Sequence record: MZ475891.1
Direction: 5' to 3' (one strand)
DNA length: 64,000 nucleotides
Each line of letters opens with the position of its first letter. Position 1 is the stretch's first letter. Below, one piece after another: positions 12,971 to 34,547 of this stretch. Below the pieces are notes generated by a model, which worked only from the letters and a program-made list of their open reading frames with translations, had not been told where the DNA came from and ran no database searches. The translations under genes were made by a program, and so were the position numbers.

Positions 12971-13741
12971 ATGAGCAATATCGATACCACAATGCCTGAA
13001 GGCAAATGGGAGTTCAACGAGTCGGTTGCTTGCGTGTTTGATAACATGCTGCAAAACTCCATCCCATCTTATGCCCGTATGCGTGACCTGACGTATCGTC
13101 TGGGTCGTCGCTTCGTAACCCCGGGTTCAGCTATCGTTGATCTCGGTGCTTCACTCGGCCGAGCTATCGAGCCGTTTGCAAAAGAGTTCGGCAAGTATGA
13201 CTACCATCATGCTGCTGACGCTCCTGGCGAAGACTACGAAACAGGCAATCACTATAGCCTGTACGAAGTAGCGCCTGCGATGCGTGAACGTCTGGTGCAG
13301 AATGAAGTGCTCAACTCAGTGAATGCCAAACTGGAAAGTGAATCGCTGGTCGATGCAGACACGTTTATGTTTGATGGGCAAGTGCATTGCTCGCTGATTC
13401 TGAGTGTACTGACGCTCCAGTTCACGCCGATTGAACATCGTCAACACATTCTGGAAAACGTGTACAACTCACTGCAACCAGGCGGCGCATTCATCCTCGT
13501 TGAGAAGGTGTTAGGCGATAACAACTATCTCGACAAAATGCTGGTGGACACCTACTACCAGATGAAAGGCGGTAACGGTTACAGCGCCGAGTCGATTGCG
13601 ACTAAACGTAAGTCACTGGAAGGCGTACTCGTTCCTGTTAAAGCAGCGTGGAACGAAGAACTGTTGCGTAAAGCAGGCTTCGGTCAGGTAGAAAGTTTCT
13701 ATCGCGACCTGAACTTCGCAGGATGGATTGCTATTAAGTAA
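12971..13741 (+). CDS. cmoA: CmoA-like carboxy-S-adenosylmethionine synthase
   Basis: WEFNESVACVFDNM..SIPSY, DLGASLG, TLQF, LQPGGAFILVEK, KGGNGYS..I.TKRKSLE and AGF..V..F...NF all align with CmoA, including the KR Arg. Confidence 0.85.
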   Translation: MSNIDTTMPEGKWEFNESVACVFDNMLQNSIPSYARMRDLTYRLGRRFVTPGSAIVDLGASLGRAIEPFAKEFGKYDYHHAADAPGEDYETGNHYSLYEVAPAMRERLVQNEVLNSVNAKLESESLVDADTFMFDGQVHCSLILSVLTLQFTPIEHRQHILENVYNSLQPGGAFILVEKVLGDNNYLDKMLVDTYYQMKGGNGYSAESIATKRKSLEGVLVPVKAAWNEELLRKAGFGQVESFYRDLNFAGWIAIK

Positions 13742-13750
13742 GGAAATACT

Positions 13751-15013
13751 ATGAAAGTAAACGGGCGTATCTTAGCTATCGTCCCACACAAGACAATGCA
13801 AGACCGTACCAAGTCGGGTGTGGGTTCATACATTGATGGGCTAGAGGCCTACGGCTTCTGCGACTTTATCACAGACGGAGAGAATAGCTCCGTTACGAAA
13901 AGTCAGTGGTTCACTTATGGTGACACTACTCTCAGTGACGGTTATAAGATAGGGCATATCCAGAGCGAGTTGCTGATTGCACTTGAGCGTCTGCCTTACC
14001 GTGCGATTATTTGCAGCACGTATGAGGCGATTGAAGCCTGCGTGTCTCTAGGTCTGCCGAAGATTATGCCCGTTTACTATCGCACGCACAACAGCTTTTT
14101 GCTCACACAAGATCTCAAGGGTCTTGGTGCAGAGAAGATCCACCGTGCGTTGTTACAAGCGAAAGTCACAGGGCTGCGCATCCTTGCTAACTGTGATTCG
14201 ACTGCGATCAATCTTGCTGAGCGCTATAAGACGCCAGCGCACGTTGCCTACAACTCGTTCTCAGTGCCTGACTACAACCCACCAGCTAAACGTGTTCCAC
14301 AGTTGTTGATTATCTGTCGCTATGAGAAGGTCAAGCGCACGTTGTTTGCTGCGCGTATTGCTGCTGCATCAGGACTACCCGTTCGTGTTATGACAGGCAG
14401 TGATCGTCAAGCACGCAATTGGGAGAAAGAGCTGGCTGAGGCGGGCGTCAAAGAGTATACGGTCGTCAGTGGCCTTAGCGGCAAACAGAAACTCGAATTT
14501 ATAGGCGCTTGCACCGTAGCCCTTTCTACTGCGAGCGTTGAATCATTTGCTAATGGTGTGCGTGAGTCCATACCTTACTGCCCTACCTTTATCGTGCAGA
14601 CATCCAAGTACGATTGGGCTAAGGACTATACGCGCTTCTGTACCGCCGACAAGCATGTTCATATCAGAACTGTTGATCGCGTATCGGACCAAGCCGTAGC
14701 TGAAATCGGAAGTGAGATAGCGCAAACAGCTACCACTCGTTATCTGACAGGACCTCAGCGTAAGCAGCTACTGACTGCTTGGGCAAAGCAAGTTGATCGT
14801 GGTTGGTCCGACTTTGTTCAGAAGGCTGTTGTTGACGATGACGGCAAGCCGCTGCGCACCGAGCTGTATCAAGAACTGATCGACAAGTCAGAGATCGATT
14901 GGTCACAAACGCCCACGCTGATGCGTACTGTAAATGCGTTACATAAATGCCACGCTCGTTTGGGCCTGACATTTGATGGCACTAAAATCAAATATAAGAG
15001 GAAGCGCAAATGA
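13751..15013 (+). CDS. GT-B fold glycosyltransferase-like protein
   Basis: C-terminal domain CRYEKVKR...; EX7E motif ESFANGVRE. Confidence 0.65.
   Translation: MKVNGRILAIVPHKTMQDRTKSGVGSYIDGLEAYGFCDFITDGENSSVTKSQWFTYGDTTLSDGYKIGHIQSELLIALERLPYRAIICSTYEAIEACVSLGLPKIMPVYYRTHNSFLLTQDLKGLGAEKIHRALLQAKVTGLRILANCDSTAINLAERYKTPAHVAYNSFSVPDYNPPAKRVPQLLIICRYEKVKRTLFAARIAAASGLPVRVMTGSDRQARNWEKELAEAGVKEYTVVSGLSGKQKLEFIGACTVALSTASVESFANGVRESIPYCPTFIVQTSKYDWAKDYTRFCTADKHVHIRTVDRVSDQAVAEIGSEIAQTATTRYLTGPQRKQLLTAWAKQVDRGWSDFVQKAVVDDDGKPLRTELYQELIDKSEIDWSQTPTLMRTVNALHKCHARLGLTFDGTKIKYKRKRK
14928..14935 (+). promoter_or_regulatory. CTGTAAAT motif (putative phage promoter)
   Basis: 74 nt upstream of the 15010 start. 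Confidence 0.45.
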
Positions 15014-16086
15014 GTGTTATCGGTGATATTTATAACATCCCACAACCTTTCGCAATGTATGTCGGGAATTGTGAGACGCGTGCTCAAGCCAAAGTTGCTG
15101 CGGGCACAATCGAGTGGGCGCCAGAGAAAGTGTGCTGCACCGTAGATGATGGTAACAACCTGTTCCCTAACGTACCTTCAATCAACCCTGCTGACGTGCA
15201 TAAGACAGATGCAGAAACTTTAGTGATTGGCTGTGCACCTTTCGGCGGCCGCATTGACGAGCACATGGACAAAGCTATTCGTAGCGCTATCTATCGTGGA
15301 CGCAACATCGCTGCTGCTATGCATACGCGCCTGGCGGATAATCCTGAATACGTTGAGCTGGCTGATCGCTACAACGTCAAGCTGTATGACTTCCGCCATC
15401 GTCCTGATGCGTACCCACTCGGTACTGGTGAGAAGCGTAGCGGTCTGCGTCTGTTAACTGTCGGTACTGATAGCTCATGCGGTAAGAAGTTTACCACGCT
15501 GTCTCTGTATCGTGAACTCAAAGCTATTCATGAAGCCACTACGTTCTGCTCTACTGGCCAGACGGGTTTCTTGATTAGCGGTTGCGGTATCAACAACGAC
15601 ACGATTGTTGCCGACTTCCTTGCTGGTGCCGCTGAATCACTTTCGCCTGATGGTCCTGCTGATCATGTTTATCTGATTGAGGGTCAAGGCGCTATCACGC
15701 ACCCAGCATACACAGGCGGCAGTATGAGTCTGATTGCTGGCTCGCAGCCTGATCATCTCATCCTGTGTCACGCATGGAACCGTCAGAATCAGTTGGGCGT
15801 TAAGCGTAAGCCTGACCTTGATTTTGAGATGCGTGCTAACATTGAAGCGGCACGTATTCACGGTCTCAACCCGACTTACATCGGTATCAGCATTAACTTC
15901 TCTGAGTGCAACCTCACCGCCGATGAGCAAGATAAAATCCTGTACCAACTCGCATCCACGTATGAGATTCCCGTGTTCGACCCCTCACAGGACACTTCTG
16001 TGTTGCGTGACCTCGCTCGTATGTTAGCAACTAAAGCCAAAGCAAGGAGCCTCGATGGCCAAGCATCCCCTACGCAAGCTGTTTGA
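15010..16086 (+). CDS. DUF1611 family P-loop protein (DgcN-like N-acetyltransferase family)
   Basis: VGTDSSCGKKFT, STGQTG, DFLAGAAE, IEGQGAITHPAY, GSQPDHLILCH. Confidence 0.8.
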   Translation: MSVIGDIYNIPQPFAMYVGNCETRAQAKVAAGTIEWAPEKVCCTVDDGNNLFPNVPSINPADVHKTDAETLVIGCAPFGGRIDEHMDKAIRSAIYRGRNIAAAMHTRLADNPEYVELADRYNVKLYDFRHRPDAYPLGTGEKRSGLRLLTVGTDSSCGKKFTTLSLYRELKAIHEATTFCSTGQTGFLISGCGINNDTIVADFLAGAAESLSPDGPADHVYLIEGQGAITHPAYTGGSMSLIAGSQPDHLILCHAWNRQNQLGVKRKPDLDFEMRANIEAARIHGLNPTYIGISINFSECNLTADEQDKILYQLASTYEIPVFDPSQDTSVLRDLARMLATKAKARSLDGQASPTQAV

Positions 16087-16930
16087 ACAGCATGTGAAAA
16101 AAGAAGTGAAAGCAGACAAGGTAGCTGTACTGCTTTCATCTGGCCTCGATGGTTTGGTTGGCGCATTAGCTGCACACGACCTGGGCAAGAAGGTACATGC
16201 CTTCACATTCCAAATGGGTGACAACCCTAGCTTTGACAGTCGCCACGCACAGATTGTTGCGCAGAAGATGGGTTGGGAGTTCACGCTTGTTAAAGTTCCC
16301 ACCAGCGTGTCTGCTATCGCATTAGCATGGCGCGTGTTGCACTCCAAATATCGCTGCATCAAGAAGCGTGACTATGAGTGTGCGTACCCTATGGTCTATT
16401 GCTACAAGGCAATCAAAGACGCTGGGTATAAGTATGTGCTAAGCGGGCTGGTGGCTGATGGTTACTTCCTGTATAACCGCAACACGCACATTCAGAAAAT
16501 CAGCGGGCCACACTCTGACGCTCAGAAGTATCATGAGTTCCGTACTCAATACTTTAGTCCGTGGCTTAAACACGGTAAGAAGTCTCTGGGCGTTGACGGG
16601 TACAACCCGAGCGGTATGTTGCAGCATGAAATGTTGTGCGATAACTTCGGCCTGATTCACGTTAACCCGTGGATGCAGAACAAGGTGTTTGACTACTTCA
16701 TCAAATACACTTGGCAGGAGCTGAATCAGCCTAAGCAGAAGATGCCACTAACCGAAGCGTGGGCAGAACACATTGCTCTTGTTGGTCATCGCCCACACAG
16801 GGGCTATCAGACAGAAGCCAAAGTGCCTGAATACTTTGAGCATCTGATCGATAACCCTGAGATTAACTTTAACGGGCGCAAGCGCATCATGGACGTGGCA
16901 CGCGACTGGTCCAAACGAGAGCCTGAATAA
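16055..16930 (+). CDS. ATP-dependent amide ligase (asparagine-synthetase C-terminal domain only)
   Basis: PP-loop LLSSGLDG and VLSGLVADGYF (cf. VLSGEGADELF); no N-terminal glutaminase domain. Confidence 0.72.
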   Translation: MAKHPLRKLFEQHVKKEVKADKVAVLLSSGLDGLVGALAAHDLGKKVHAFTFQMGDNPSFDSRHAQIVAQKMGWEFTLVKVPTSVSAIALAWRVLHSKYRCIKKRDYECAYPMVYCYKAIKDAGYKYVLSGLVADGYFLYNRNTHIQKISGPHSDAQKYHEFRTQYFSPWLKHGKKSLGVDGYNPSGMLQHEMLCDNFGLIHVNPWMQNKVFDYFIKYTWQELNQPKQKMPLTEAWAEHIALVGHRPHRGYQTEAKVPEYFEHLIDNPEINFNGRKRIMDVARDWSKREPE

Positions 16931-17185
16931 ATGCATCCTGTTATCACAGACTTTCTTGGTCCTATCGTTAAGCGGCTGGGCTTATTCACTGCTATATTCG
17001 GTTTTGTCGGCGTGCTGCTGTCTGTGATCGCAGTGCTTGTGTGCCGCCCAGAAGTCCTTCAATACGAATACGATACTGTAAATAGACTTCGTACTGAGGG
17101 TATTGTATTCTTGGGTAAAGGCGTTCTTATTTACATCGTAGGCGAGATACTTGAAGGCACGTTCAAGTGGAGAAAAGATGATTAA
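16931..17185 (+). CDS. Small membrane protein
   Basis: Two hydrophobic segments. Confidence 0.6.
   Translation: MHPVITDFLGPIVKRLGLFTAIFGFVGVLLSVIAVLVCRPEVLQYEYDTVNRLRTEGIVFLGKGVLIYIVGEILEGTFKWRKDD
17076..17083 (+). promoter_or_regulatory. CTGTAAAT motif (putative phage promoter)
   Basis: 94 nt upstream of the 17178 start. Confidence 0.45.
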
Positions 17186-17441
17186 CAAATTCGTGATGAA
17201 GAAGACTCCGACCATTGAAGCCTGTCAGTGGAATGGAGAGAACAAGGAAGAGATTGAAGCCTTCCTTGGCGATAGCGGATTCGTTGTTGGACGTTACGTG
17301 CAGATTGGTGTTCTGGATAAATACCAGAAGCCAACTATTGCTAACGTAAGCGTAGGCAACTATGTGATCAAGCGCGACGATGGTAAGTTCTATGCCATTA
17401 CTGCGCAAGATCTGTTTGAGAATTATGTATTAGCAGATTGA
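17178..17441 (+). CDS. Conserved phage hypothetical protein (EA.QW...G.YVIK...FE..Y type)
   Basis: IEACQWNG, VGNYVIKRDDGKFY and LFENY pattern is common in phages; GGAG RBS. Confidence 0.7.
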   Translation: MINKFVMKKTPTIEACQWNGENKEEIEAFLGDSGFVVGRYVQIGVLDKYQKPTIANVSVGNYVIKRDDGKFYAITAQDLFENYVLAD

Positions 17442-17448
17442 GGCCATA

Positions 17449-17901
17449 ATGAATCTGTTTTCTATTTTAAAACAGCAAGTGAAGAAATCCCTGACGACCG
17501 AAGCAACGCTTGAGCCAGAAGTGCGCAAACACTTTGACTGGCGTTTCAGTGTTGACGTCAAGGGCATGATGTACATTGTAGGCAAGACAGGCGCTAACAC
17601 CTGCTTCTATCTTGAGCCAGGTCACGTTGAGCCTACTGCCTGCTATCCTGATGAACTGCTTGCGAAGATTGATAGCTGGGGCGCTGCGAAGTACGTGTCC
17701 TACGCTGTCTACTTCAAGAAGTTCAGTAGCCCTGTAGCTGAGAACATCAAGACGCTTGAGCAGGCCAAGACAGGCAAGCCTAAAGCGTTTAAGAAAGGCT
17801 ACTTTATCTGTGGCGTAACACCGAAAGGTAAGCGCGTCAAACTGTGTCGTCTGCACAACAGCCTAAGCGGTATGCAGTGGGTTGATGTAGACCAGAAGTA
17901 A
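17449..17901 (+). CDS. Hypothetical protein
   Basis: 150-aa ORF with GAGG RBS. Confidence 0.7.
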   Translation: MNLFSILKQQVKKSLTTEATLEPEVRKHFDWRFSVDVKGMMYIVGKTGANTCFYLEPGHVEPTACYPDELLAKIDSWGAAKYVSYAVYFKKFSSPVAENIKTLEQAKTGKPKAFKKGYFICGVTPKGKRVKLCRLHNSLSGMQWVDVDQK

Positions 17902-17915
17902 ACCAAGGAGCTTAT

Positions 17916-18236
17916 ATGATTAGCGACATTGACATTGGCCATTATTATTGTTCTGCGAGCGGTATACCGTTTCGCGTAAAAGAACGTGCAGCACACGGAC
18001 AAGATTGTTCTCTGTCGATGATCGTATTTGAGAACGTGGAGGCAACTAAGGATTACCCTGTTGGTCAAACTTGGGTGCTTCCAGAATCTCTGTTCGTGAA
18101 ACAGTATTCCGAATTTACGGAAGGAAAGTATCATGAACGAAACAACGCTCTTAGAGCATCTGAAAACAAGACACTGGCAACCAGAGAAGCATTTCGGGTG
18201 GCTTTCGCCGAAGACCCTGACAGTGCCACTGTATAG
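17916..18236 (+). CDS. Hypothetical protein, DUF1653-like
   Basis: G.Y...SG..FRV...A.H...MIVF...WVLP...F pattern; AAGGAG RBS. Confidence 0.55.
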   Translation: MISDIDIGHYYCSASGIPFRVKERAAHGQDCSLSMIVFENVEATKDYPVGQTWVLPESLFVKQYSEFTEGKYHERNNALRASENKTLATREAFRVAFAEDPDSATV

Positions 18237-18649
18237 CTTTGACCGACAGATGAGAGGCGTTCAAGTTTATACGCCTAGCGCACCGAAGAAAGACCCGAAC
18301 CCCAAAGCGTGTCGTTACTTCACTCGCGTGTTCGGTGGCAAACAGTTGGTGTGGGGAACGGAAATTAGACCTATACGGGCCGACCGTTTTCTTAACTGAG
18401 TCTGTGTTTAAAGCGTGTGCGCTGCATCGTCTCGGTCTCAATGCGTGGTCTGTTTTAGGCTCGAACGTGAGTGACTATTTATACCACCAGCTTAGTCTTC
18501 TTAATCTGCACTTTGTTTGTCTCGGTGATGCGGATAAAGCTGGTGAGGAGTTCAGCCAGACGTTTGGTCGTGGTGCTGTTAGCGCCGACTTGGACGAGAT
18601 GACTGATGAGCAGTTACTCGATTTAACTCTACCACTATTAAGGAAATAG
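18133..18649 (+). pseudogene. Small primase-like TOPRIM gene interrupted by a +1 frameshift near 18361-18365
   Basis: Frame 1 gives HLKTR...TVPLY...GVQVY.P...RYFT...VWGTE; frame +1 continues LDLYGPTVFLTESVF...LGDADKAG; deleting one A fuses them into 171 aa. Confidence 0.7.
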
Positions 18650-18650
18650 G

Positions 18651-19079
18651 ATGGAACATAAAGTTGTCGTGCGTATTCTCGGACCTGTTGGCAGCGGTAA
18701 GTCTTCTGTTTACGCCAAGCTCGTTAAAGGTCTGACTGATACCGGCGCTATCATCAAACACGCAGATGAGCAAGCGTGGAAGATGTTGAACAACAGCGGC
18801 GAAGTAACTTCGGCCGACACGGTTCTCGATGAGTTCCGCACCGAAGTTACCTTCGAAGAGGTTGTGATTCGTGACGACTACACCAAGTCTAAGAATCAGA
18901 TCATGCAGTTCTTCGCGTACTCACATCTGCCGCCTAACCTGCAGGCTGTAAGCAAACCGATTGCGTTGCTTGCGCAGGAGATGGACCAGAATCTGCCTGA
19001 CGGTGCTGAGAAAGCCGCTGGTCTACGCAAGCTGCTTGAAGCGAAAGACTGTCTGGTTCGTGCGCTGGTAGCCAAGTAA
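18651..19079 (+). CDS. P-loop-like N-terminus fused to a conserved phage helical-hairpin domain
   Basis: GPVGSGKS; C-terminal MQFFAYSHLPPNLQAVSKP...LRKLLEAKDCLVRA. Confidence 0.65.
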   Translation: MEHKVVVRILGPVGSGKSSVYAKLVKGLTDTGAIIKHADEQAWKMLNNSGEVTSADTVLDEFRTEVTFEEVVIRDDYTKSKNQIMQFFAYSHLPPNLQAVSKPIALLAQEMDQNLPDGAEKAAGLRKLLEAKDCLVRALVAK

Positions 19080-19093
19080 TTCGGAGAGCAAAC

Positions 19094-19483
19094 ATGCCTA
19101 CTTTTATTCGCCCTCCCTCATTACTCAAGTCAGTGCCTACGTCATCAACTGTGGAAGCAACTGACATTTTCGCATCACTCGCACCTATCAACAACGTAAT
19201 TAACCTAAGTGCCGTTCAAGCTCTGCGCCGTGAGCAAATCGGTGCTGGTCATGTTGAACAGTTCTCTGAGGCTATTGGTCTGCATCCAGAAGACCCTGCT
19301 CCTGAAAATGATCTTGTCAGCGTTCCAGCGATCACTTTCTCATTTGAAGGAGATGCGTGTGAGACCTGGTATTTCTGCGGGCCTGAACGTACCTTAGCTG
19401 AATGGGCTGTAGTGCGCGATGCCGTTGAACAATCTTTTGTTGATAATTCATACCATCATGATATGAACTTCGAAATCAACTAA
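19094..19483 (+). CDS. Hypothetical protein
   Basis: 129-aa ORF with GGAG RBS. Confidence 0.65.
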   Translation: MPTFIRPPSLLKSVPTSSTVEATDIFASLAPINNVINLSAVQALRREQIGAGHVEQFSEAIGLHPEDPAPENDLVSVPAITFSFEGDACETWYFCGPERTLAEWAVVRDAVEQSFVDNSYHHDMNFEIN

Positions 19484-19489
19484 CAACAC

Positions 19490-19515
19490 AAAGGGTGGCT
19501 TCGGCTGCCCTTTTT
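19490..19515 (+). terminator. Rho-independent terminator
   Basis: GGGTGGC-TTCG-GCTGCCC followed by T5. Confidence 0.85.
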
Positions 19516-19519
19516 CGAT

Positions 19520-19527
19520 CTGTAAAT
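19520..19527 (+). promoter_or_regulatory. CTGTAAAT motif (putative phage promoter)
   Basis: Intergenic, immediately after the terminator, 30 nt before the 19558 start. Confidence 0.6.
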
Positions 19528-19557
19528 AACTCGTATAACATCTAACGAGAAACTACC

Positions 19558-19959
19558 ATGAGACCTGAAAACATTTCACGCACCTATCGCGTCGGTCAGT
19601 CTGACCTGGAGAAAGCACACAATGTCTGCGGAGAGAACAATGTAACACTCTCAGATGTGGTGCGCAGATACATCGAAAGAATCGTACTGACTGAGGGTGA
19701 GTTCCTTATGAACGAGCGTAAGCACGTACCTGAGTCCCAACTGAATGTACGCCTGCCCTTTTATATTGCGCACTCCTTTGCATCTGTGTGTAAGTCTCGT
19801 GGTACGTTAGCCTCTAAAACCATTCTCAACTTTGTCAAGAATATTGCTCTTTCCGGGACTATCCCTGAGGAGTTAAAGTATGCTTCTGACGCAGAGTTGC
19901 GTGCCTATATTACCTCAGAGCGCTCTCGCCTCGATGCACTGGAAGCAAAACTCAAATGA
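19558..19959 (+). CDS. Tandem ribbon-helix-helix DNA-binding protein
   Basis: Two RHH-like units: SRTYRV...TLSDVVRRYIERI and LNVRLP...LASKTILNFVKNI. Confidence 0.6.
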   Translation: MRPENISRTYRVGQSDLEKAHNVCGENNVTLSDVVRRYIERIVLTEGEFLMNERKHVPESQLNVRLPFYIAHSFASVCKSRGTLASKTILNFVKNIALSGTIPEELKYASDAELRAYITSERSRLDALEAKLK

Positions 19960-20795
19960 TTCTAACTAGTCCCATTCGCTATCAGGGTAACAAGCGCACT
20001 CTGATGCCTCTTATTCTCGAACATGCGCCTGTGAAGGATTGCGTTCGCATGATAGACGCATTCGGTGGTAGTGGTACTGTTGCGCTTAACATGCCGCACA
20101 AGTTTCGCATCTACAATGAGCTGAGCACGCCTGTGTTTGAGATCGTCCAGTTGCTTGCGCATCAAGACCCGAAGAAAACATTGGGTCAGATTAAGCGTAT
20201 CGTCAAGCGTTTTTGTCTAACCAATAGCAGCCAAGACAACTACGACATGTTCCGTGCGTATGTGCAGAAGAAGCCTAGCCCTCTTCACCATTATATCGCA
20301 CACAGGCACGCACGCTCTAACATGCTGCGCTTCAACCAGAAAGGCATCTACAACGTGCCGTTCGGTGAGCGTGGTCTGATTGGTAAGTTCGATCAGCTTG
20401 AGCAGGAGCTGGTGCAGTTCCACGAGCGTATGCAGAACACGCACATCACCAACATGCGCTATAACCTGTTGCTCAAGTCCGTGTCAAAGCATATCGGACC
20501 GAACACGTTCATTTACTTTGATCCTCCGTATCTTGCTAGTGGTGCGATGCAGTACGGCAAGTGGACTGAGCACAACGAGCGCAACCTGCTGTCCGTGCTT
20601 GAGTATCTGAATCGTCAAGGCTGCCCGTGGATGTTGAGTAACGTTCTCCAGCATCGGCACCACACGAACGACTTGCTCAAGCGCTGGCTAAAGAAACACG
20701 CAACGACTGTCATCTATCCTGACAAGTCTTATTCAATGGCCAACTCTCATTCCGATAGTCACAGCACTATCGAGATTCTGGCAATGAACTACTGA
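19956..20795 (+). CDS. dam: DNA adenine methyltransferase (Dam family)
   Basis: SPIRYQGNK, DAFGGSGTV, YNVPFG, YFDPPY, WMLSN. Confidence 0.9.
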   Translation: MILTSPIRYQGNKRTLMPLILEHAPVKDCVRMIDAFGGSGTVALNMPHKFRIYNELSTPVFEIVQLLAHQDPKKTLGQIKRIVKRFCLTNSSQDNYDMFRAYVQKKPSPLHHYIAHRHARSNMLRFNQKGIYNVPFGERGLIGKFDQLEQELVQFHERMQNTHITNMRYNLLLKSVSKHIGPNTFIYFDPPYLASGAMQYGKWTEHNERNLLSVLEYLNRQGCPWMLSNVLQHRHHTNDLLKRWLKKHATTVIYPDKSYSMANSHSDSHSTIEILAMNY

Positions 20796-20802
20796 GGTAC
20801 AA

Positions 20803-21640: not shown

Positions 21641-21641
21641 T

Positions 21642-21944: not shown

Positions 21945-21947
21945 GAT

Positions 21948-21955: not shown

Positions 21956-21984
21956 AAACCTAAAGCCATCTAATTGAGGTCAGT

Positions 21985-26011: not shown

Positions 26012-26014
26012 TTC

Positions 26015-26041
26015 ATGGGGCCTCGTGCCCCATTTCTGTTT
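26015..26041 (+). terminator. Rho-independent terminator
   Basis: ATGGGGC-CTCGT-GCCCCAT followed by TTCTGTTT. Confidence 0.65.
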
Positions 26042-26055
26042 CTCGGAGAGATGCT

Positions 26056-27663: not shown

Positions 27664-27991
27664 CGTTTTCAAATACGTGATGTTCTTGCTGGTCAAAGAC
27701 GAGCGCACGAACAAAGATCGCACGCATATACCTATAATCTTCCCACGTCATATCATGCACAGTGATATGGGCGATGAGATGCGCGGCTATGCGATACATA
27801 ACGGTTACGTGGAGAATCGTTACCACCAGACAATGGAACCTGTTAGCGCAGGCTTTGTTGATCTCAACACACTGTCGTGCTTTGGTGAGTCTGAGTCTAT
27901 GGAACTCAAGTCTCGTCCAGAAGAAGACAGCCTAATCCTTCGTGAGTATTTCAAAGATGATGGAAAACTTCCTGAAGTACCTGTGGAGTGA
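27635..27991 (+). CDS. Hypothetical protein
   Basis: KYVMF...PIIFP....H and PVSAGFV......CFGESESM.LKSRPE.D motifs typical of a phage family. Confidence 0.7.
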   Translation: MSNNQKLPPNVFKYVMFLLVKDERTNKDRTHIPIIFPRHIMHSDMGDEMRGYAIHNGYVENRYHQTMEPVSAGFVDLNTLSCFGESESMELKSRPEEDSLILREYFKDDGKLPEVPVE

Positions 27992-28295
27992 TGAGTTCTG
28001 GTCCTCTCCTGCTTCTGCGTTCGCACCCACTGTTGTAATCATCTCATGGTTTGTGTTCTGTGAGATTCGTGAACGCCGTGCGTTACGTGCAGCACAGCGC
28101 GTTGTAGCAAGTGGCTGGGAGCCTGTTGAACACGCCACGTATCAACACAAATGGCTGCCGTGGGTGAAGTGCTATGTCATGTTCTATACTGTCAGTCTGA
28201 ACGATAAGTTCATGCCTGCTGTGTACGTGCTAAGAGGCAAGCATAGCTCTGAAATCCCCATGCACAAATTCCATTCTCGTTGGAGTTTAGTATGA
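27957..28295 (+). CDS. Hypothetical membrane protein
   Basis: Hydrophobic segment near the N-terminus; start uncertain. Confidence 0.5.
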   Translation: MMENFLKYLWSDEFWSSPASAFAPTVVIISWFVFCEIRERRALRAAQRVVASGWEPVEHATYQHKWLPWVKCYVMFYTVSLNDKFMPAVYVLRGKHSSEIPMHKFHSRWSLV

Positions 28296-28609
28296 CACCC
28301 CTTATTATGTTTGACGCACGAACCATTCGCGTGCTCAAGCAAAGTTTCGGTCAGGACAAACCTTTTGTTGTTGCAGGGTTAAACCCAATCGTAGGCAACA
28401 AAGGTGACCGTGTTACTCTCGCTAATGCCTGTAGCGTAGTCGCCATCCCTCGTGTGATGGGACTTGAAGTAGGCCAAGTGCTTTACGTAGGCACAGATGA
28501 TGAAGTCTACGCATGGCCTTCTGATATGGTGATGGAATTTGCTTCTGTCTCTGATAACCAAACTCGGGCCATTGCATACGCATTGCGCCCAATACTTTCG
28601 GATGATTAA
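28292..28609 (+). CDS. Hypothetical protein
   Basis: ATG 28292 after GGAG. Confidence 0.6.
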   Translation: MTPLIMFDARTIRVLKQSFGQDKPFVVAGLNPIVGNKGDRVTLANACSVVAIPRVMGLEVGQVLYVGTDDEVYAWPSDMVMEFASVSDNQTRAIAYALRPILSDD

Positions 28610-28611
28610 AA

Positions 28612-29712
28612 ATGACGGGTCCTCTCGATCTCACTAACCCACAGCACTTCGAACTGTACTCGTTGCACAGCGTTGATGCGCAGTACATCAATCTGTGTGA
28701 CGCACTCCTCACGCAGGGTACGCACGAATCTGACCCAGATCGCACTGCCGATACGTGGCATACGCTGATCGGTATTGGCTTCCAGTTGTCTAACACCAAC
28801 ATCGCTTTCCCTGCGCTGCTGTCTAAGCGTGTCAACGTCCGTGCAGCTATCGATGAATCCTGCTGGTTCGCACGCGGTGAAACGAACATCGCAACTCTCG
28901 GTTCTAAAATCTGGAACGAGTGGGCAGATGAAGAAGGTGAGAACGGTCCTATCTACGGCTTCCAGTACCGTAACTGGCCTGACATTAAAGTGTTCAACAC
29001 TGTCGAAGGCATGATTGAGCAGCACATCCCACCAGCGATGATTGAGCGCATCTCGAAAGAGATCAACCGCATGAAGGCGCAGGGCTATATCGAAACTGCG
29101 TTGCCTGATGGTCGCGTGTTGTACGAAGGTTATATCGATCAGTACGCTGATGCACTGCGTCAAATCATGGCGCGTAGTCGTAGCCGTCGCATTCGTGTGC
29201 AAGCGTTCAATCCGGGTTACGTTGGTATGCAGAGCCTGCCTCCGTGCCATACCGAGTTTGAGTTCAACGTAACCAAAGCCACTGCGTATGAGATTGCGCA
29301 GATGGAAGCACGCTCAATGCGCCCTGACGCTGACTCACTGCATATCGTGGTGACGATGCGCAGCAATGATGCACTTCTCGGGCGTCCCTTCAATATCGTT
29401 GGCTACAGCGCCATGCACCAGTTGTTTGCGAAGTGGGCTGGTCTGAACGTTGGTTCGTTTACTCTGAACGTTACCAACATGCACATGTACGATCACCACC
29501 GAGAAGCGTATGCACAACAGCGCGAGCAGTGGCTGGAGCTACAGACGCAGATGCAGACGACAGGTAAACCTGTTGTTTACCCAACTCTCGAAATCACTGA
29601 CGACATTCTGGGCCTGACTCCAGAAGAGCTGCTGGATAACGTCAACGTCGATTGGTTCGAGCTGGTGGACTACTCTCCTAAACCTGCTGTTAAAGGACGC
29701 GTAACCAAATGA
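28612..29712 (+). CDS. thyA: Thymidylate synthase
   Basis: IWNEWAD, GPIYGFQYRNW, SRRI, LPPCH, RSNDALLGRPFN, NMHMY. Confidence 0.95.
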   Translation: MTGPLDLTNPQHFELYSLHSVDAQYINLCDALLTQGTHESDPDRTADTWHTLIGIGFQLSNTNIAFPALLSKRVNVRAAIDESCWFARGETNIATLGSKIWNEWADEEGENGPIYGFQYRNWPDIKVFNTVEGMIEQHIPPAMIERISKEINRMKAQGYIETALPDGRVLYEGYIDQYADALRQIMARSRSRRIRVQAFNPGYVGMQSLPPCHTEFEFNVTKATAYEIAQMEARSMRPDADSLHIVVTMRSNDALLGRPFNIVGYSAMHQLFAKWAGLNVGSFTLNVTNMHMYDHHREAYAQQREQWLELQTQMQTTGKPVVYPTLEITDDILGLTPEELLDNVNVDWFELVDYSPKPAVKGRVTK

Positions 29713-30371
29713 TGCTAATCAGCCGCATTGCTGCATTCCTGTATGTCGGGTATGCAGAGTCAGTGGAAGACATTCCACGTTTGCTCGTCGAAAAAGTTAA
29801 GGTGCGCATCGAAGATCCCGATTGGGACCCGTTTGATGACGTTACCGTTGAAGATGCACCGCCTATCCTCGAAATGACAGGCAAGGTCATCTATCATCTG
29901 CCACTCAACTGCTTCCTGATTGACGGTCGCATGGAGCAGGATGAATCGTCCGAAGATACGCTCAAGATGCAGAAGCATTGCGCGGATAACTTCTTCAAGC
30001 ACAAGCAGACGCGCAACGGTCGTGTAGGCATTGCCGTGGACAGCATGATCAGAGAACTGTCCTACGCAGAGGCACAGCACCCTAACTGGCCTACTGAGCC
30101 GCTGCACGCTGGTGCTATCCTCGCAGAAGAAGCTGGTGAGTGTCTGCGTGATTGCGTGTCCTACGATGAAACAGGTCGTGATGCTCTGCTAACCTCTATG
30201 GCCGAAGAAGCTGTGCAGACAGGCGCGATGGCGATTCGTTTTCTGATCAATGCACATCGTTCTAAAGAGCGCACGCTGCCTCGCTCTACAGTCCGTGACC
30301 TGCTGTCAGACACGTCCATTCCTCTGGCGGAGCGTGTTGCTAAACTTCTTGATGTGGTGGACGCTAAATGA
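29709..30371 (+). CDS. Protein with C-terminal MazG-like NTP pyrophosphatase domain
   Basis: AILAEEAGECL...EEAVQTGAMAIRFL acidic helical motif. Confidence 0.55.
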   Translation: MMLISRIAAFLYVGYAESVEDIPRLLVEKVKVRIEDPDWDPFDDVTVEDAPPILEMTGKVIYHLPLNCFLIDGRMEQDESSEDTLKMQKHCADNFFKHKQTRNGRVGIAVDSMIRELSYAEAQHPNWPTEPLHAGAILAEEAGECLRDCVSYDETGRDALLTSMAEEAVQTGAMAIRFLINAHRSKERTLPRSTVRDLLSDTSIPLAERVAKLLDVVDAK

Positions 30372-31279
30372 AACTACTCGCACTTATCCCGTCTGCTACC
30401 ACCAATGTGTTTCGCACGCTGCATTGTGTAGGCACGGCAGAAGAGTTTCCTGTGGGCGAACATCCTAAGTGGGATGGCTTTGGTCTGAATCTGACTAACG
30501 TCAAAATCATTCCTGACCTGGCTAAAGACGCCGTGCCTGATTCGTTCTATGTTACTATCGATAGCCACCTCGACTGGTCTGTTGATCTTGACCGTATCGA
30601 TACGTTCAGCGCGGATTATCTCATCTGGTGCGGTAAGCATACGCCTTCAATTGAAGCTGTGCTCGAAGCCCACATGATTAAAGGCCAGTTGCCGAATCTG
30701 GTGCAGGACTTTGATGCGTTCGTCGCTGATCTGCAAGAGCGTCTGGACAACATGACCAGCCTCGCTAAAGATCGTATGACCATCTCAGGCAGCACGCTGA
30801 TCGATAGCGACACCACAGCCAAGTACAACTTGTGGGCTATCTATCGTCACTGTCTGATGTTAGACAACAAGATGGTCCTGCTGTACGGTAAGGACAATCA
30901 CATCCATGTGTCCGACACGCACGTATCTGAAAAGGGTATCGGCTGGTGGTTGACCGAGCACAACAAACACATGATGAGCATTGCACAGCAAAACGATCTG
31001 CTGGCCGCTTACATTACGTTTGAACGCGATAGCTCTGGCTATACGTTTGTTGGTGCTGACGGTACTCAGGTTAAACGTCCTGTCGAAAGCAGCGAGTTCA
31101 TGCACATGGCGCATCACGGCCTGTTCCCTAAAGTTGTAGTGCGTGAAGACGCAGACGGCCGTAACTTCGAACTGTCGTTTGATTACGCCGAATACTTCCC
31201 ACAGGCGTATCACGATTTTGTCAATCATGCGTGGGCCGGCCGTTCTGATCGTTCACGCGATTTGGTTCGCTTCATCTGA
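30368..31279 (+). CDS. Hypothetical protein
   Basis: 303-aa ORF. Confidence 0.72.
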   Translation: MKLLALIPSATTNVFRTLHCVGTAEEFPVGEHPKWDGFGLNLTNVKIIPDLAKDAVPDSFYVTIDSHLDWSVDLDRIDTFSADYLIWCGKHTPSIEAVLEAHMIKGQLPNLVQDFDAFVADLQERLDNMTSLAKDRMTISGSTLIDSDTTAKYNLWAIYRHCLMLDNKMVLLYGKDNHIHVSDTHVSEKGIGWWLTEHNKHMMSIAQQNDLLAAYITFERDSSGYTFVGADGTQVKRPVESSEFMHMAHHGLFPKVVVREDADGRNFELSFDYAEYFPQAYHDFVNHAWAGRSDRSRDLVRFI

Positions 31280-31284
31280 TCGTC

Positions 31285-31330
31285 GCGCTGTCTGCTGTCA
31301 GTAATTTGAAGCTACTATAGGAGACAGCGC
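31285..31330 (+). promoter_or_regulatory. RBS-occluding inverted repeat with a TAATTT motif in its loop
   Basis: GCGCTGTCT (31285-31293) is a perfect complement of AGACAGCGC (31322-31330), which abuts ATG 31331. Confidence 0.55.
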
Positions 31331-31669
31331 ATGAAATATGATAAGACCAAAGACTACCAACCGTTCAAGTATCTTGAGCCAGACCCAAAGGCTCCAAGAG
31401 TAGGCTTCTACGGTTCGACTGGCCACACTGTCACAAAGGACGTTCTGATAGGGCAGGACGTATGCGAGTTTGAGTTCAAGCCCGAAGAGTTGAACAATAT
31501 GAATCGCGGTACGTTGCTCTTCCGTGCTAAAGATAGTGGCGGAACTATTGTCGTAAAGAAATGCTCTGTGCTTGGATTGAAAATGGTAATTACGCTAGAG
31601 AGAAGGGTGATTCAGTTCGGCAAGGTTCAAGCTGAATGGATGACCACATCCCGACTGTATAACTACTAA
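31331..31669 (+). CDS. Hypothetical protein
   Basis: 112-aa ORF with AGGAG RBS. Confidence 0.7.
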   Translation: MKYDKTKDYQPFKYLEPDPKAPRVGFYGSTGHTVTKDVLIGQDVCEFEFKPEELNNMNRGTLLFRAKDSGGTIVVKKCSVLGLKMVITLERRVIQFGKVQAEWMTTSRLYNY

Positions 31670-31677
31670 CTGTAAAT
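31670..31677 (+). promoter_or_regulatory. CTGTAAAT motif (putative phage promoter)
   Basis: Intergenic, 34 nt before the ParB-like gene. Confidence 0.6.
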
Positions 31678-31711
31678 ACATTGTACAGAAGCAACTACAA
31701 GAGAAAAGAGA

Positions 31712-32410
31712 ATGGCAAAAATTGCTAAAGCAAAGGAAGGGAAAAAGAAAAGCAACCCTATGTTGATTGACCTGAAAAAGTTCAAGTCAGTTAAACAGCT
31801 TAAGGGTGCGAAGTACAACCCTCGTTTCATTACAGACAGCCGACTGAGAGCGCTCGAAGGTTCTTTGGGCAGCTTCGGTGATTTGTCTGGCGTGGTGTTC
31901 AACAACAGCGTGGACAGTGGCGTGCTGATCTCAGGCCACCAGCGCCTCAAGTCGATTGAGAAGTGGGACTCGCGCATTGAGATTCAGCAAACGTCTGACA
32001 AGTACGGCACGGTAGCGCTGGGTTATATCCATGCCACCAGCGCCAAAGGTAAAACGATCAGCATCCCACTGCGTATCGTTAACTGGTCAGATAAGAAAGT
32101 GGAGTTTGCTGCTAACATTGCCGCGAACGCCCACGGCGGTGAGTTCGATAACAAAAAGCTCGCGTCACTTGTCGAGAAGCTGGACCTGACTACAATCAAG
32201 CCAGCTCTTATCGGGCTTGACCCGTTAGAGATTCGCGGCCTGCAACAGACGCTGAGCAAACAAGCTATCGTCGAGCAGGAAAAGCGTGTTGGTAAAACAA
32301 CAGGCAAAATGAACGGCAGCACCGGCGAGTTCAAAGAGTACACGACTGATGAAGTTGGTACTGCGCTGACCTGCACCTGCCCACGTTGTGGCTTTAAGTT
32401 CGAGGGATAA
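31712..32410 (+). CDS. ParB/Srx-like N-terminal domain protein with C-terminal zinc ribbon
   Basis: KYNPR, LISGHQRLK, ANIAAN; CTCPRCGFKF. Confidence 0.78.
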   Translation: MAKIAKAKEGKKKSNPMLIDLKKFKSVKQLKGAKYNPRFITDSRLRALEGSLGSFGDLSGVVFNNSVDSGVLISGHQRLKSIEKWDSRIEIQQTSDKYGTVALGYIHATSAKGKTISIPLRIVNWSDKKVEFAANIAANAHGGEFDNKKLASLVEKLDLTTIKPALIGLDPLEIRGLQQTLSKQAIVEQEKRVGKTTGKMNGSTGEFKEYTTDEVGTALTCTCPRCGFKFEG

Positions 32411-32411
32411 C

Positions 32412-34547
32412 ATGATCATCAAGCCGCCTACAATGAAAGAGATTAATAAGCTGCCCAAGCCCTGGTCAGGTATGAGTTTCTTTGCAGGTTGCGGTGGTTC
32501 ATCTACCGGTCACAAGATGGCCGGCATTAACATCCTACTGAGCAACGAGTTCGTGGACGCGGCTCGTGAATCGTATGAAGCGAACCATCCAACAACCAAA
32601 GTGTTGCCCCACGATATTCGTCGTCTTGACCCGAAAAAGCTGCTTAGCTATTGCGGCCTGAGCCAAGGCGAACTGGACTTGCTTGACGGCAGTCCTCCGT
32701 GCTTCACCGAAGACACGTTCATTCATACTGACACTGGTATGAAGTTCATCACTGATATGCGCATCGGTGACTTCGCTATGACCTCTGTTGGTAAGTATCA
32801 TCCTGTGTATGACACGATGGTGCGTCCGTATGACGGTCAGATGCACAGAATTGAAACGCTGCTCGGTCAGAACAATGCAACACCTGAACACCCATTCTTT
32901 GTTCGTCGTCAGAGCGAAGAAGGTGGCGGGTACAGTGCGCCGTTCTGGTGTGACGCTAAAGATGTGCAGGAAGGTGACCTGTTAGGTACGCCTCGTGTTA
33001 CGCCTGACATGGGTGAAGCACACACGCACGAGATTATCTCGTCGTTGACCGCGCAGCTTGTGCGTTGGATTGCATTGCCTGAGTTCTGGTGGCTGATTGG
33101 ACACTGGTGCAATCGCGGTGCAATCGATAAGATTCGTGGTGTCGATGTTATTCAATTCACCTCGATGACAGCGATGGAAAACTCGCTGGTGGAACAAGCG
33201 TTCGACGTGCTCAAGTTAAGCAGCATCAACAGCGCTTCGTCCGACATGGGCGTTCATCGTAAGACCGTTCGTGTTGTTATGGACACAGACCTGTTGCTGT
33301 TCTTGCGTATGTTCATCGCACAGGGCAAGAAGTCTATGTCACGCCGTCTGCCTGGCATGATCTTCCATCTGGCTAAAGAGCTGAAACAGCAATTCATTCT
33401 CGGCTATCTGGGTCGTGATTACGTCACAGCAATGGGCGTTGGTCATGCGTTAGAGGCTGACTCAAAGCGCTTCCTCGTTGAGATGAATTACCTGTGCTGC
33501 TCTGCGTTCAACCGACCGCTGTTCGATGCAATGTTGTTCACTGACTTGCACTACGGCAGTCCGATGTTACCGCCGAGTCGCTTCATTACCAAAGAGCACA
33601 TCGGCTTCCTGTTCTTGCAAGAAGAGGTTAATTTCTTCTTCGAGTTCGAGCCGGAAGACCCGCATCTGTGGGTTGAAGTGATTGAGAACTTTACGCACCA
33701 TGAAACGTGCAACGTCTATAACTTCTCAGTCAGTGTTGATGAGACGTATGTTGCTAACGGCATGGTCGTGCATAACTGCAAAGGGTTCTCGACTGCTGGC
33801 GTGAAAGAAGACGGCTGGGGTAAAGAGGTTAAGTACAGCGGCAACAAGTATCAGCAAGTCGATGACCTGTTCGATCAGTATTGCCGTATGCTCAAGCACA
33901 TGCAGCCTAAAACGTTCACTGCGGAAAACGTTAGTGGCCTCGTTAAAGGTGCGTCGAAGGGTTACTTCATTGAAATCATGAAGACCTTTGATCAGCTGGG
34001 TTACTATGTGCGAGCACCGTTGCTTAATGCTGCGTGGCTTGGTGTGCCTCAGTCTCGTGAACGTATCATCTTTATGGGTGTGCGCAAAGACGTGGCGAAA
34101 GCACTCGGTTATAAAACTGCGTTGACTGCTGTGCCTGATGTAACACCTCAATCAAGCATGGCATTCCTTGCAGATGCATTGCCGAACATTCGTCGCTATA
34201 AAGGTACGGAGCGTGACATTATCAAGTATCTGCCTGCTGTTAACGGGCCGATGCCTACGATTACCGCCGCTGACGCTATCGCATACGAAACAGCACGCTT
34301 CTCCTCTGCTGGCTTCATTGAAGACGACAAAGGGCACAGACGCAAGCTGACGATTGATGAACTCAAAGTTGTATCAGGCATGCCTAGTGATTACGTGCTC
34401 ACAGGTAAGTTTGAAGAACAATGGGAACGTCTCGGTCGTGTGTGCGTACCTGCAATGACGTGTGCTGCGGCAAGCGCGTTGATACGCCATGTGCTTGAGC
34501 CTTACGCGAAGCTGCGTAAAAAGAAACCTGGGGATCGTTTTCGTTAA
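32412..34547 (+). CDS. DNA cytosine-C5 methyltransferase homolog, intein-containing (candidate carboxymethyltransferase)
   Basis: Motif I FFAGCGG, IV SPP/CKGFS (split), VI ENVSG, VIII QSRERI, IX RKLTIDE, X LGRVCVP; ATG 32412. Confidence 0.88.
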   Translation: MIIKPPTMKEINKLPKPWSGMSFFAGCGGSSTGHKMAGINILLSNEFVDAARESYEANHPTTKVLPHDIRRLDPKKLLSYCGLSQGELDLLDGSPPCFTEDTFIHTDTGMKFITDMRIGDFAMTSVGKYHPVYDTMVRPYDGQMHRIETLLGQNNATPEHPFFVRRQSEEGGGYSAPFWCDAKDVQEGDLLGTPRVTPDMGEAHTHEIISSLTAQLVRWIALPEFWWLIGHWCNRGAIDKIRGVDVIQFTSMTAMENSLVEQAFDVLKLSSINSASSDMGVHRKTVRVVMDTDLLLFLRMFIAQGKKSMSRRLPGMIFHLAKELKQQFILGYLGRDYVTAMGVGHALEADSKRFLVEMNYLCCSAFNRPLFDAMLFTDLHYGSPMLPPSRFITKEHIGFLFLQEEVNFFFEFEPEDPHLWVEVIENFTHHETCNVYNFSVSVDETYVANGMVVHNCKGFSTAGVKEDGWGKEVKYSGNKYQQVDDLFDQYCRMLKHMQPKTFTAENVSGLVKGASKGYFIEIMKTFDQLGYYVRAPLLNAAWLGVPQSRERIIFMGVRKDVAKALGYKTALTAVPDVTPQSSMAFLADALPNIRRYKGTERDIIKYLPAVNGPMPTITAADAIAYETARFSSAGFIEDDKGHRRKLTIDELKVVSGMPSDYVLTGKFEEQWERLGRVCVPAMTCAAASALIRHVLEPYAKLRKKKPGDRFR
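32700..33776 (+). mobile_element. Intein (359 aa) with degenerate LAGLIDADG-like region
   Basis: Starts CFTEDT, block B ATPEHPFFV, ends NFSV...VANGMVVHN, followed by Cys. Confidence 0.92.

Follow-up and report, generated by a model that had tools for sequence, protein, structure and literature searches.

Two loci of the Erwinia jumbo phage pEa_SNUABM_13 are predicted to encode an extended 5-carboxymethylcytosine pathway

Introduction

The closest described counterpart of the genes studied here is the CmoA/CmoX/CmoY system of S-B43, a Synechococcus phage (Yang et al., Nat Commun 2025; PMC12783734). In this system, CmoA makes carboxy-S-adenosylmethionine (Cx-SAM) and CmoX makes 5-carboxymethylcytosine (5cxmC) at GC sites. 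CmoY, a homolog of AsnB, carries out an ATP-dependent ligation of glycine, and the glycine amide of 5cxmC is present in S-B43 virion DNA. The S-B43 enzyme, SpCmoX, contacts the carboxymethyl group through R350, which replaces N304 of HhaI and mirrors the N374K exchange in M.MpeI. Employing the motif SPPC together with R350 as criteria, the authors obtained 5,615 CmoX candidates. They also described clusters of ligases that differ in their pockets and whose amines are unknown, and found ParBc proteins to be frequent neighbors of S-B43-type systems (PMC12783734). Here, we analyzed positions 1-64000 of the sequence record MZ475891.1 (termed the window), which belongs to Erwinia phage pEa_SNUABM_13, a jumbo phage of 264.7 kb with the host Erwinia amylovora. 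Nearly all genes in the window are labeled 'hypothetical protein' in GenBank, and two groups of them are predicted to encode a pathway related to the S-B43 system. All evidence presented is computational and was derived from homology, gene context and predicted structures.

An earlier note on this DNA had drawn on the same precedents. The cyanophage system with an ATP-dependent amide ligase that it named is real and corresponds to S-B43, and its statement that a basic residue in place of the motif X Asn allows carboxymethyl transfer, as in M.MpeI N374K, agrees with the summary given by Yang et al. (PMC12783734). The text of that paper mentions neither Erwinia nor inteins, DUF1611 or glycosyltransferases, and our literature search returned no further paper on natural 5cxmC systems beyond it. 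That 5cxmC is a natural base was first shown in December 2025, with one downstream product, the glycine amide. According to the gene cluster described here, the carboxyl handle would be elaborated much further.

Results and discussion

Two loci with the genes of a predicted 5cxmC pathway

We consider it likely that the two loci jointly form a pathway of the CmoA/CmoX/CmoY type that hypermodifies DNA cytosines after replication and is extended by accessory enzymes. The first locus comprises the first four of the following genes, and the p150 gene lies beyond it:

12971-13741, plus strand: cmoA, carboxy-SAM synthase homolog, 256 residues (TIGR00740, PDB 4gek, PHROG 4752)
13751-15013, plus strand: GT-B (GT4-like, EX7E) glycosyltransferase (GT) homolog, 420 residues (AlphaFold2 (AF2) model, Foldseek, EX7E motif)
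15010-16086, plus strand: DUF1611 / DgcN-like P-loop protein, 358 residues (PF07755, PF17396, PDB 7xrj)
16055-16930, plus strand: CmoY-like ATP-dependent amide ligase, 'class i', synthetase domain only, 291 residues (PF00733, homology to CmoY)
17449-17901, plus strand: orphan protein p150, 150 residues, candidate extra component (conserved proximity to the cmoA/ligase cluster)

The second locus comprises:

31712-32410, plus strand: ParB-like protein, 232 residues, with a C-terminal ribbon of the CxxC...CxxC type (PHROG 620, PHROG 498)
32388-32699, plus strand: cmoX N-extein, motifs I-III, ending in ...LDGSPP (aligns to residues 20-99 of 8yf3)
32700-33776, plus strand: intein, 359 residues, with Cys1 in 'CFTEDTFI', block B 'TPEH' and C-terminal 'VVHN' (PF14890, PF13403, TIGR01443)
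33777-34547, plus strand: cmoX C-extein, its first residue being the catalytic Cys (+1), with the motif X Arg at nt 34437-34439 (8yf3 match, alignment column)

The earlier note had placed an operon of a CmoA-like gene, a GT-B glycosyltransferase, a DUF1611 protein and a glutaminase-less ligase at 12971-16930, and a ParB-like gene plus a C5-methyltransferase homolog with Arg in motif X at 31712-34547. The open reading frames (ORFs) of both sets are present on the plus strand and their coordinates proved exact. The gap between the loci amounts to 14.8 kb and not to the 16 kb given before, and the former inventory was incomplete, as the conserved p150 gene had been overlooked. The four genes at 12971-16930 follow each other closely or overlap (9-nt gap, 4-nt overlap and 32-nt overlap), which is consistent with one transcription unit. 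Promoter and terminator scans at both loci returned site counts not above those of shuffled sequence and are thus uninformative on the operon structure.

Like S-B43, pEa_SNUABM_13 encodes a CmoA homolog, a C5-methyltransferase with SPPC and the motif X Arg, a glutaminase-less AsnB-type ligase and a ParB-type neighbor, and no CmoB. It differs from S-B43 in that the identities are only 28% (CmoA), 36% (CmoX) and 33% (ligase), that its genes are distributed over two loci, and that its CmoX contains an intein. Furthermore, a 13-residue insert and the PP-loop sequence SSGLDG mark its ligase as a different class, one that goes together with DUF1611 and p150 and, in part of the cases, with a racemase, a GT4-type glycosyltransferase or both. 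Pseudomonas phage PaBG offers a second comparison, as its gp176-181 contiguously encode a ParB-like protein, CmoX (48% identical), CmoA (42%), a p150 homolog and an AsnB-like ligase. However, the PaBG CmoX is free of an intein, the PaBG ligase (24% identical) falls into another class, and the phage lacks both DUF1611 and a glycosyltransferase. The PaBG paper places the asparagine synthase encoded by gene 180 solely with the metabolic genes, and its text ties none of gp176-181 to DNA modification. The core of the window system is a further member of the system published in late 2025; the extension by DUF1611, glycosyltransferase, racemase and p150 and an intein within the catalytic motif distinguish it as a variant.

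The methyltransferase homolog is a predicted CmoX

The methyltransferase of the second locus matches PF00145 (E = 6.3e-38, Pfam). Its best relative in the Protein Data Bank (PDB) is 8yf3, the CmoX of S-B43 (E = 1.8e-54), followed by HaeIII at 1e-16. After removal of the intein in silico, motif IV reads GSPPCKGFSTAG and contains SPPC. In motif X, the sequence ERLGRV aligns with ERVGRM of SpCmoX, and its Arg occupies the same column as SpCmoX R350 (HhaI N304). This Arg is residue 684 of the ORF and residue 325 of the spliced protein. Translation probably starts at ATG 32412, which is also the GenBank start and has GAGGGA 4 nt upstream, and not at GTG 32388; residue numbers counted from GTG 32388 are thus too high by 8. 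Of what the earlier note had said on the methyltransferase ORF at 32388-34547, the family and the motif X Arg stand, but the intein had gone unseen and the GTG start is unlikely.

Both SPPC and the R350-equivalent Arg were present in all six cluster-linked methyltransferases compared, i.e., SpCmoX and the enzymes of PaBG, the metagenomic contig L014, and the loci L027, L030 and L031. The window protein carries both CmoX signatures of Yang et al., which speaks for the previous suggestion of a C5-methyltransferase homolog suited to Cx-SAM. As judged from its sequence, it is a predicted CmoX-type DNA cytosine C5-carboxymethyltransferase. It resembles M.MpeI N374K in having a basic residue at the position of the motif X Asn. 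M.MpeI N374K is, however, engineered and targets CG, while SpCmoX targets GC, and the window enzyme is natural and phage-encoded.

The ParB-like protein encoded next to CmoX matches PHROG 620 ('ParB-like', E = 2.3e-31) and PHROG 498, the N-terminus of ParB-methyltransferase fusions (E = 1.7e-17). Its own N-terminus matches the PADLOC model MTase_II (E = 5e-9), and a GHQR motif is visible in the translation; the Pfam ParBc model gave no match up to E = 1. CmoX is directly preceded by a ParB homolog in PaBG, L012/L014, L027 and L031; in L030, the homolog lies 1.7 kb upstream, with several small genes in between. The ParB-like protein is likely a DNA-binding partner of CmoX.

CmoA and the supply of carboxy-SAM

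CmoA of the window scores 137.3 bits against TIGR00740 (E = 6.6e-40), which is under the equivalog cut-off of 193.3. The biochemically proven SpCmoA of S-B43 reaches only 115.6 bits on this model and thus scores below the window protein, so that the cut-off is no valid exclusion for phage CmoAs. Further matches were obtained to E. coli CmoA (PDB 4gek, E = 2.8e-28) and to PHROG 4752 (E = 1.9e-78). In E. coli CmoA, R199 alone contacts the S-carboxymethyl carboxylate of Cx-SAM (PMC4482062). R213 of the window protein aligns with this residue, within the motif 'KR..LE.V'.

At locus L008, a phage 3-deoxy-D-arabino-heptulosonate 7-phosphate (DAHP) synthase directly follows the ligase (L008:14162-15025; TIGR00034, 180 bits, above the cut-off of 173). 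It comprises 287 residues and is without the N-terminal ~45 residues of the TIGR00034 model. Plausibly, this enzyme is a way to raise prephenate, the co-substrate of CmoA, via the flux through the shikimate pathway, and its presence in the ligase string fits the demand of CmoA for prephenate.

The amide ligase belongs to a class of its own

The ligase matches PF00733 (E = 6.2e-13, Pfam). Its residues 4-160 correspond to positions 235-394 of the 517-position AsnB model, i.e., the match is confined to the synthetase half and no glutaminase domain is present, as the earlier note had read it. The PDB contains no sequence match. Among phage-database entries other than those of the Erwinia/Dickeya jumbo phages, CmoY is the closest relative (32% identity, E = 5e-32), and a local tblastn comparison with S-B43 CmoY yielded 33-34% identity (E = 1e-44); the ligase gene sits in the cmoA operon.

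Alignment separates three groups of ligases, namely the window type, CmoY and the PaBG/Y3/SNUABM_5 type. The window-type ligases (window, AD1, SNUABM_3, L008, L013 and L025-L030) are 58-87% identical, with L031 at 46%. Identity to the window type is 33-36% for CmoY and 19-27% for the PaBG/Y3/SNUABM_5 ligases. Relative to CmoY, the window-type ligases possess a 13-residue insert. Their PP-loop is present but variant, reading LSSGLDG at residues 27-33 of the window protein (SSGLDG at residues 28-33, nt 16136-16153), compared to the canonical SGGxDS and to SGGVDS in S-B43 CmoY. The form SSG[LM]D[GS] was found in 17 of 18 near-full-length homologs, the remaining one (P0020) having SSGLDA. As this class is separate and strictly tied to DUF1611, and often to a racemase, the amine joined by the window ligase is probably not glycine and the product probably not the glycine amide 5gcxmC.

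DUF1611, racemase and glycosyltransferase as accessory enzymes

The DUF1611 protein comprises the two domains of its family (PF07755, E = 2.1e-46; PF17396, DUF1611_N, E = 5.5e-18). It matches PDB 7xrj (E = 3.3e-53) and displays a P-loop, GTDSSCGK, at residue 152. Against the DgcN model NF041892 it scores 289.8 bits, under the cut-off of 480, and we therefore file it as a DUF1611-family protein and not as DgcN. With DgcN, a D-glutamate N-acetyltransferase (PDB 7XRJ by sequence match), it shares the two-domain DUF1611 architecture and the conserved P-loop. It differs in being phage-encoded and located inside a DNA-modification cluster, and in the partner found in its relatives, an Alr-type racemase homolog. 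In the bacterial DgcN pathway, this partner is the enolase-type enzyme DgcA.

In many relatives, the alanine-racemase homolog (PF01168, TIGR00492) is encoded between DUF1611 and the ligase, while it is absent from the window. Such genes are found at:

L003:4824-5759, the pEa_SNUABM_3 locus
L008:12322-13287
L025:8099-9001
L027:7213-8190
L030:8064-9008

Because an Alr-type racemase is recurrently paired with a homolog of a D-amino-acid N-acetyltransferase, this pairing suggests a D-amino-acid-derived substituent. Without the racemase, as in the window, the D-amino acid could be drawn from the host pool. The trees of DUF1611 and the ligase are poorly resolved as regards a clade of racemase-linked copies, and only the racemase-less group of the window, AD1 and L029 is supported. 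Scanning IMG/VR for DUF1611 with a profile yielded no phages outside this family; the wider gene contexts stem from look-ups of exact proteins. Of the earlier idea that the base may be acetylated, the presence of the DUF1611 family stands; the acetyl step itself depends on a DgcN-like protein that stays under the equivalog cut-off.

The glycosyltransferase was modeled with AF2 from a 7-sequence alignment (predicted local distance difference test score, pLDDT, of 79.8). Its Foldseek neighbors in the PDB include GlgM, BshA, SenB, MshA and the glycosyltransferase of phage HY126, with E-values from 5e-10 to 1e-8. Altogether, 215 PDB matches were obtained at E<=1e-3, and the top 50 consist almost entirely of GT-B glycosyltransferases and pseudo-glycosyltransferases, the best having template-modeling (TM) scores of 0.5-0.6. 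An EX7E motif, E264-SFANGVR-E272, is invariant in 7 homologs; EX7E is a mark of retaining GT4 enzymes. No match was found in Pfam (including Glycos_transf_1), NCBIfam or PHROG, and a protein 38% identical to the glycosyltransferase (P0007) shows a weak PF00534 match. Thus, fold matches of the predicted structure together with the EX7E motif support the GT-B assignment that had been made for 13751-15013. The DgcN-like and glycosyltransferase assignments hold at the family or fold level only.

A phage GT-B enzyme acting on a functionalized C5 substituent of cytosine would parallel the glucosyl-5-hydroxymethylcytosine of T4 and the HY126 system, whose glycosyltransferase is among the structural neighbors; DNA of HY126/RB69-type phages contains arabinosylated 5-hydroxycytosine (PMC13326640). 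The handle is a hydroxyl there, whereas the window system would offer a carboxyl handle extended by an amide, and the sugar acceptor would therefore have to sit on the appended moiety.

On L026, a metagenomic jumbo-phage contig of 224 kb, a GNAT (RimI-like) acetyltransferase lies two genes past the glycosyltransferase-DUF1611-ligase string (L026:10192-11100).

Co-occurrence and gene strings connect the two loci

CmoA, CmoX and the intein are each present in 48 Erwinia and 2 Dickeya records of the phage database. In the phages compared, the slot after cmoA always holds a ligase, while the accessories vary:

Y3, L004:2438-4233: ligase of a different, AsnB-like class plus 2-oxoglutarate-Fe(II) (2OG-Fe(II)) oxygenase
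SNUABM_5: ligase only
AD1: DUF1611 and ligase
SNUABM_3: GT, DUF1611, alanine-racemase homolog and ligase
Window: GT, DUF1611 and ligase

The combination of ligase and 2OG-Fe(II) oxygenase in Y3 suggests yet another 5cxmC derivative. In other phages and in metagenomic contigs (among them L012 and L014), genes of both loci follow each other in one string:

L027: ParB-CmoX-CmoA-GT-DUF1611-racemase-ligase-p150
L012/13/14: ParB-CmoX-GT-DUF1611-ligase-CmoA-p159
L030: CmoX-DUF1611-racemase-ligase-CmoA-p150
L031: ParB-CmoX-DUF1611-ligase-CmoA-p147
PaBG: ParB-CmoX-CmoA-p150-ligase
S-B43: CmoA-CmoY-CmoX

Hence, cmoA and cmoX are adjacent or 1-4 genes apart in PaBG, S-B43, L013, L027, L030 and L031. The earlier note had assigned the two loci to one pathway and had named co-occurrence across phages as a check. 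The contiguous strings of the metagenomic phage contigs support this assignment, and so does the check itself, as CmoA and CmoX occur in the same record counts, with glycosyltransferase, DUF1611 and ligase nested within. We regard the two loci as one system because of this co-occurrence, the ligase slot after cmoA, the contiguity elsewhere and the lack of CmoB.

Proposed pathway

The CmoA, CmoX and ligase steps are based on homology to characterized enzymes; we infer the identity of the amine and the DgcN-like and glycosyltransferase steps. CmoA would convert SAM and prephenate to carboxy-SAM. The CmoX precursor would excise its intein and rejoin ...GSPP to CKGFSTAG, which would rebuild the catalytic motif IV. 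CmoX may then carboxymethylate phage DNA at C5 of its cytosines, with probable help from the adjacent ParB-like DNA-binding protein. The ligase would adenylate the 5cxmC carboxylate and form an amide with an amine. The DgcN-like enzyme might acylate a D-amino-acid-derived substituent or prepare its precursor or donor, and the GT4-like enzyme might then add a sugar in the pEa_SNUABM_13 clade, with p150 as a putative further component. Attachment could proceed via the side-chain amine of a D-diamino acid, which would leave the D-alpha-amine for acylation. Alternatively, a hydroxy-amino acid such as D-Ser could be used and its hydroxyl group glycosylated. The presence of CmoA, CmoX and CmoY homologs with key residues supports the former prediction that the phage makes 5cxmC and amidates it. 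The role of the modification is likely the shielding of phage DNA from host nucleases.

For the virion DNA, we tentatively suggest as one possible outcome a novel cytosine, in which a 5cxmC amide carries an amino-acid-type moiety (possibly of the D-form) to which the DgcN-like enzyme adds an acyl group and the GT4-like enzyme a sugar. If true, it would be the first DNA base uniting a carboxymethyl-amide linker and a sugar. The 48 related Erwinia-phage records would then represent a natural series, comprising members without the glycosyltransferase, with or without the racemase, and with the other ligase class plus the 2OG oxygenase.

Several points weigh against the extended pathway. Its two loci lie 14.8 kb apart. 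The R350N variant of SpCmoX is inactive and does not use SAM (PMC12783734); as this exchange kills the enzyme rather than switching it to SAM, the Arg is necessary and diagnostic, and not proven sufficient, for the use of Cx-SAM. The PP-loop of the ligase is non-canonical (SSGLDG vs SGGxDS). A DgcN-like score of ~290 compared to 480 bits renders acetyl transfer only a family-level guess, and an ordinary amide linkage through the alpha-amine would leave no free amine for acylation. Phages of the AD1/Alexandra type are without the glycosyltransferase. Finally, the contigs may share one broad jumbo-phage lineage, and their gene contexts are thus not fully independent.

It is also conceivable, though in our view unlikely, that a simple 5cxmC amide as in S-B43, formed with glycine or another free amino acid, is the endpoint and that DUF1611, glycosyltransferase and racemase have no role on DNA. 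These proteins would then produce or regenerate the amine donor, or have other targets such as metabolites of the host, precursors of the cell wall or proteins of the phage. Such roles would be in keeping with DgcN, the characterized family member, which works on free D-amino acids (as stated in its NCBIfam name), and with the GT4 structural neighbors BshA, MshA and GlgM, which use small molecules. Moreover, the glycosyltransferase is missing in AD1/Alexandra and the racemase in the window, which marks both as dispensable parts. However, the distribution of the genes argues for the extended pathway. DUF1611 was found in 34 phage records, and these are the same 34 that contain a class-i ligase at an identity of at least 80%. 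In all eight metagenomic contexts (8/8), DUF1611 directly precedes the ligase gene, or only the racemase homolog stands in between. The glycosyltransferase is present in 21 Erwinia records, all with DUF1611, and also in L008, L012-14, L026 and L027, and its position inside the string is always directly upstream of DUF1611. Glycosyltransferase occurrence is thus nested within that of DUF1611, which equals that of the class-i ligase, and this in turn within that of CmoA, which equals that of CmoX. This is the pattern expected for successive steps on one handle. In addition, the 13-residue insert and the PP-loop set this ligase class apart from CmoY.

Far less probable is a function of the cmoA operon in carboxymethylation of RNA or a small molecule, such as the uridine-5-oxyacetic acid (cmo5U) of host tRNA or a secondary metabolite, alongside an ordinary 5-methylcytosine methyltransferase. 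The classical role of CmoA is in tRNA modification, the RefSeq label of the homologs is 'tRNA methyltransferase', and the loci are separate in pEa_SNUABM_13. A gammaproteobacterial host is, furthermore, expected to have CmoB. No CmoB homolog was detected, however, in any true phage record of the phage collection, pEa_SNUABM_13 included, the sole match being a 3.4-kb Salmonella fragment of bacterial appearance; the earlier note had likewise seen no CmoB that could consume Cx-SAM otherwise. The 64-kb window contains no tRNA genes. The methyltransferase itself argues against this explanation through its Cx-SAM Arg and its closest structure, 8yf3, and so does its short distance from cmoA in the gene strings described above.

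The proposed elaboration of the carboxyl handle by amide formation, acylation and glycosylation can be tested directly, as the phages are cultivable and held in collections. Erwinia and Dickeya jumbo phages provide a natural deletion and replacement series, which allows the mass contributed by each gene to be assigned without any engineered mutants. Modifications of this kind set the sensitivity to restriction and other nuclease defences, hamper sequencing and cloning, and supply enzymes for DNA labeling.

An intein precedes the catalytic cysteine of CmoX

The cmoX gene is interrupted by a canonical class-1 intein with a Hint domain, in which Cys1, the block B TxxH, the C-terminal HN and the +1 Cys are all present. 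PF14890 and PF13403 (Pfam) match between the methylase halves, and TIGR01443 scores 17.2 bits, above its cut-off of 15.6. As judged from the translation, the intein spans nt 32700-33776 and is inserted immediately before the catalytic Cys. Its removal joins '...LDGSPP' to 'CKGFSTAG...' and thereby restores motif IV. The +1 nucleophile of the intein is therefore at the same time the catalytic Cys of CmoX. It is unusual for an intein to lie precisely at the catalytic Cys of an enzyme that modifies DNA, and the modification could thereby become dependent on a maturation step.

A different intein occupies the identical site in L012 (L012:7783-10014; '...GSPP|CHPEG...SHN|CSAFSNAG'). The near-identical L014 has an uninterrupted gene that reads 'GSPPCSAFSNAG', and the two contigs thus represent a filled and an empty form of the same site. 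In the phage database, the records with the window intein comprise the 48 Erwinia and the 2 Dickeya ones plus 1 Yersinia jumbo phage; CmoX of PaBG, L027, L030 and L031 is without it.

By eye, the LAGLIDADG-like motifs appear degenerate in the window ('GHWCNRG', 'GYLGRDY') compared to those of L012 ('GRFLGDG', 'GYVSADG'), and no homing-endonuclease domain was detected in the intein at the Pfam threshold. Homing-endonuclease activity can be lost without effect on intein splicing. That the locus is a decaying relic, in which the interrupted methyltransferase cannot mature and no modification is made, appears least probable of all: the intein does sit in the catalytic motif and its endonuclease motifs do look degenerate, but the splice-critical residues are complete, all ORFs are intact, and across the family the C-extein is conserved at ~85% and the intein at ~62%, as expected of a functional host protein with a tolerated intein.

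The orphan protein p150

Homologs of p150 are encoded 0-2 genes from the cmoA/ligase cluster in PaBG, L027, L008, L013, L030 and L031, despite the differing gene order. In the phage database, p150 occurs in 53 records, all of them jumbo phages (48 Erwinia, 2 Dickeya, 2 PaBG and 1 Yersinia), and these are the phages in which CmoA, CmoX or its intein was found. No Pfam match was obtained even at E = 1, and none in PADLOC. The structure of p150 is predicted with confidence (pLDDT 87). A fold search with this model yielded no PDB match, and in BFVD it returned only its own PaBG homolog.

Further genes in the window

A thymidylate-synthase homolog of 366 residues is encoded at 28612-29712, 2 kb upstream of ParB/CmoX, and contains ~100 residues of insertions relative to ThyA. 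We considered it as a hydroxymethylase feeding a rival pathway and rejected this, as 'PPCH' and the Asn of the type that recognizes deoxyuridine monophosphate (dUMP; 'PFNI') are kept and the best match is a true ThyA. At 10438-11025, the counterparts in AD1, Y3 and SNUABM_5 are annotated as macro-domain protein or O-acetyl-ADP-ribose deacetylase, and the window protein shows a faint DarG-like match (E = 0.0067). Between the two loci, at 19956-20795, lies a D12-class N6-adenine DNA methyltransferase (Dam-like, PF02086, E = 8.6e-26), and the phage DNA is thus probably modified with N6-methyladenine (m6A) as well.

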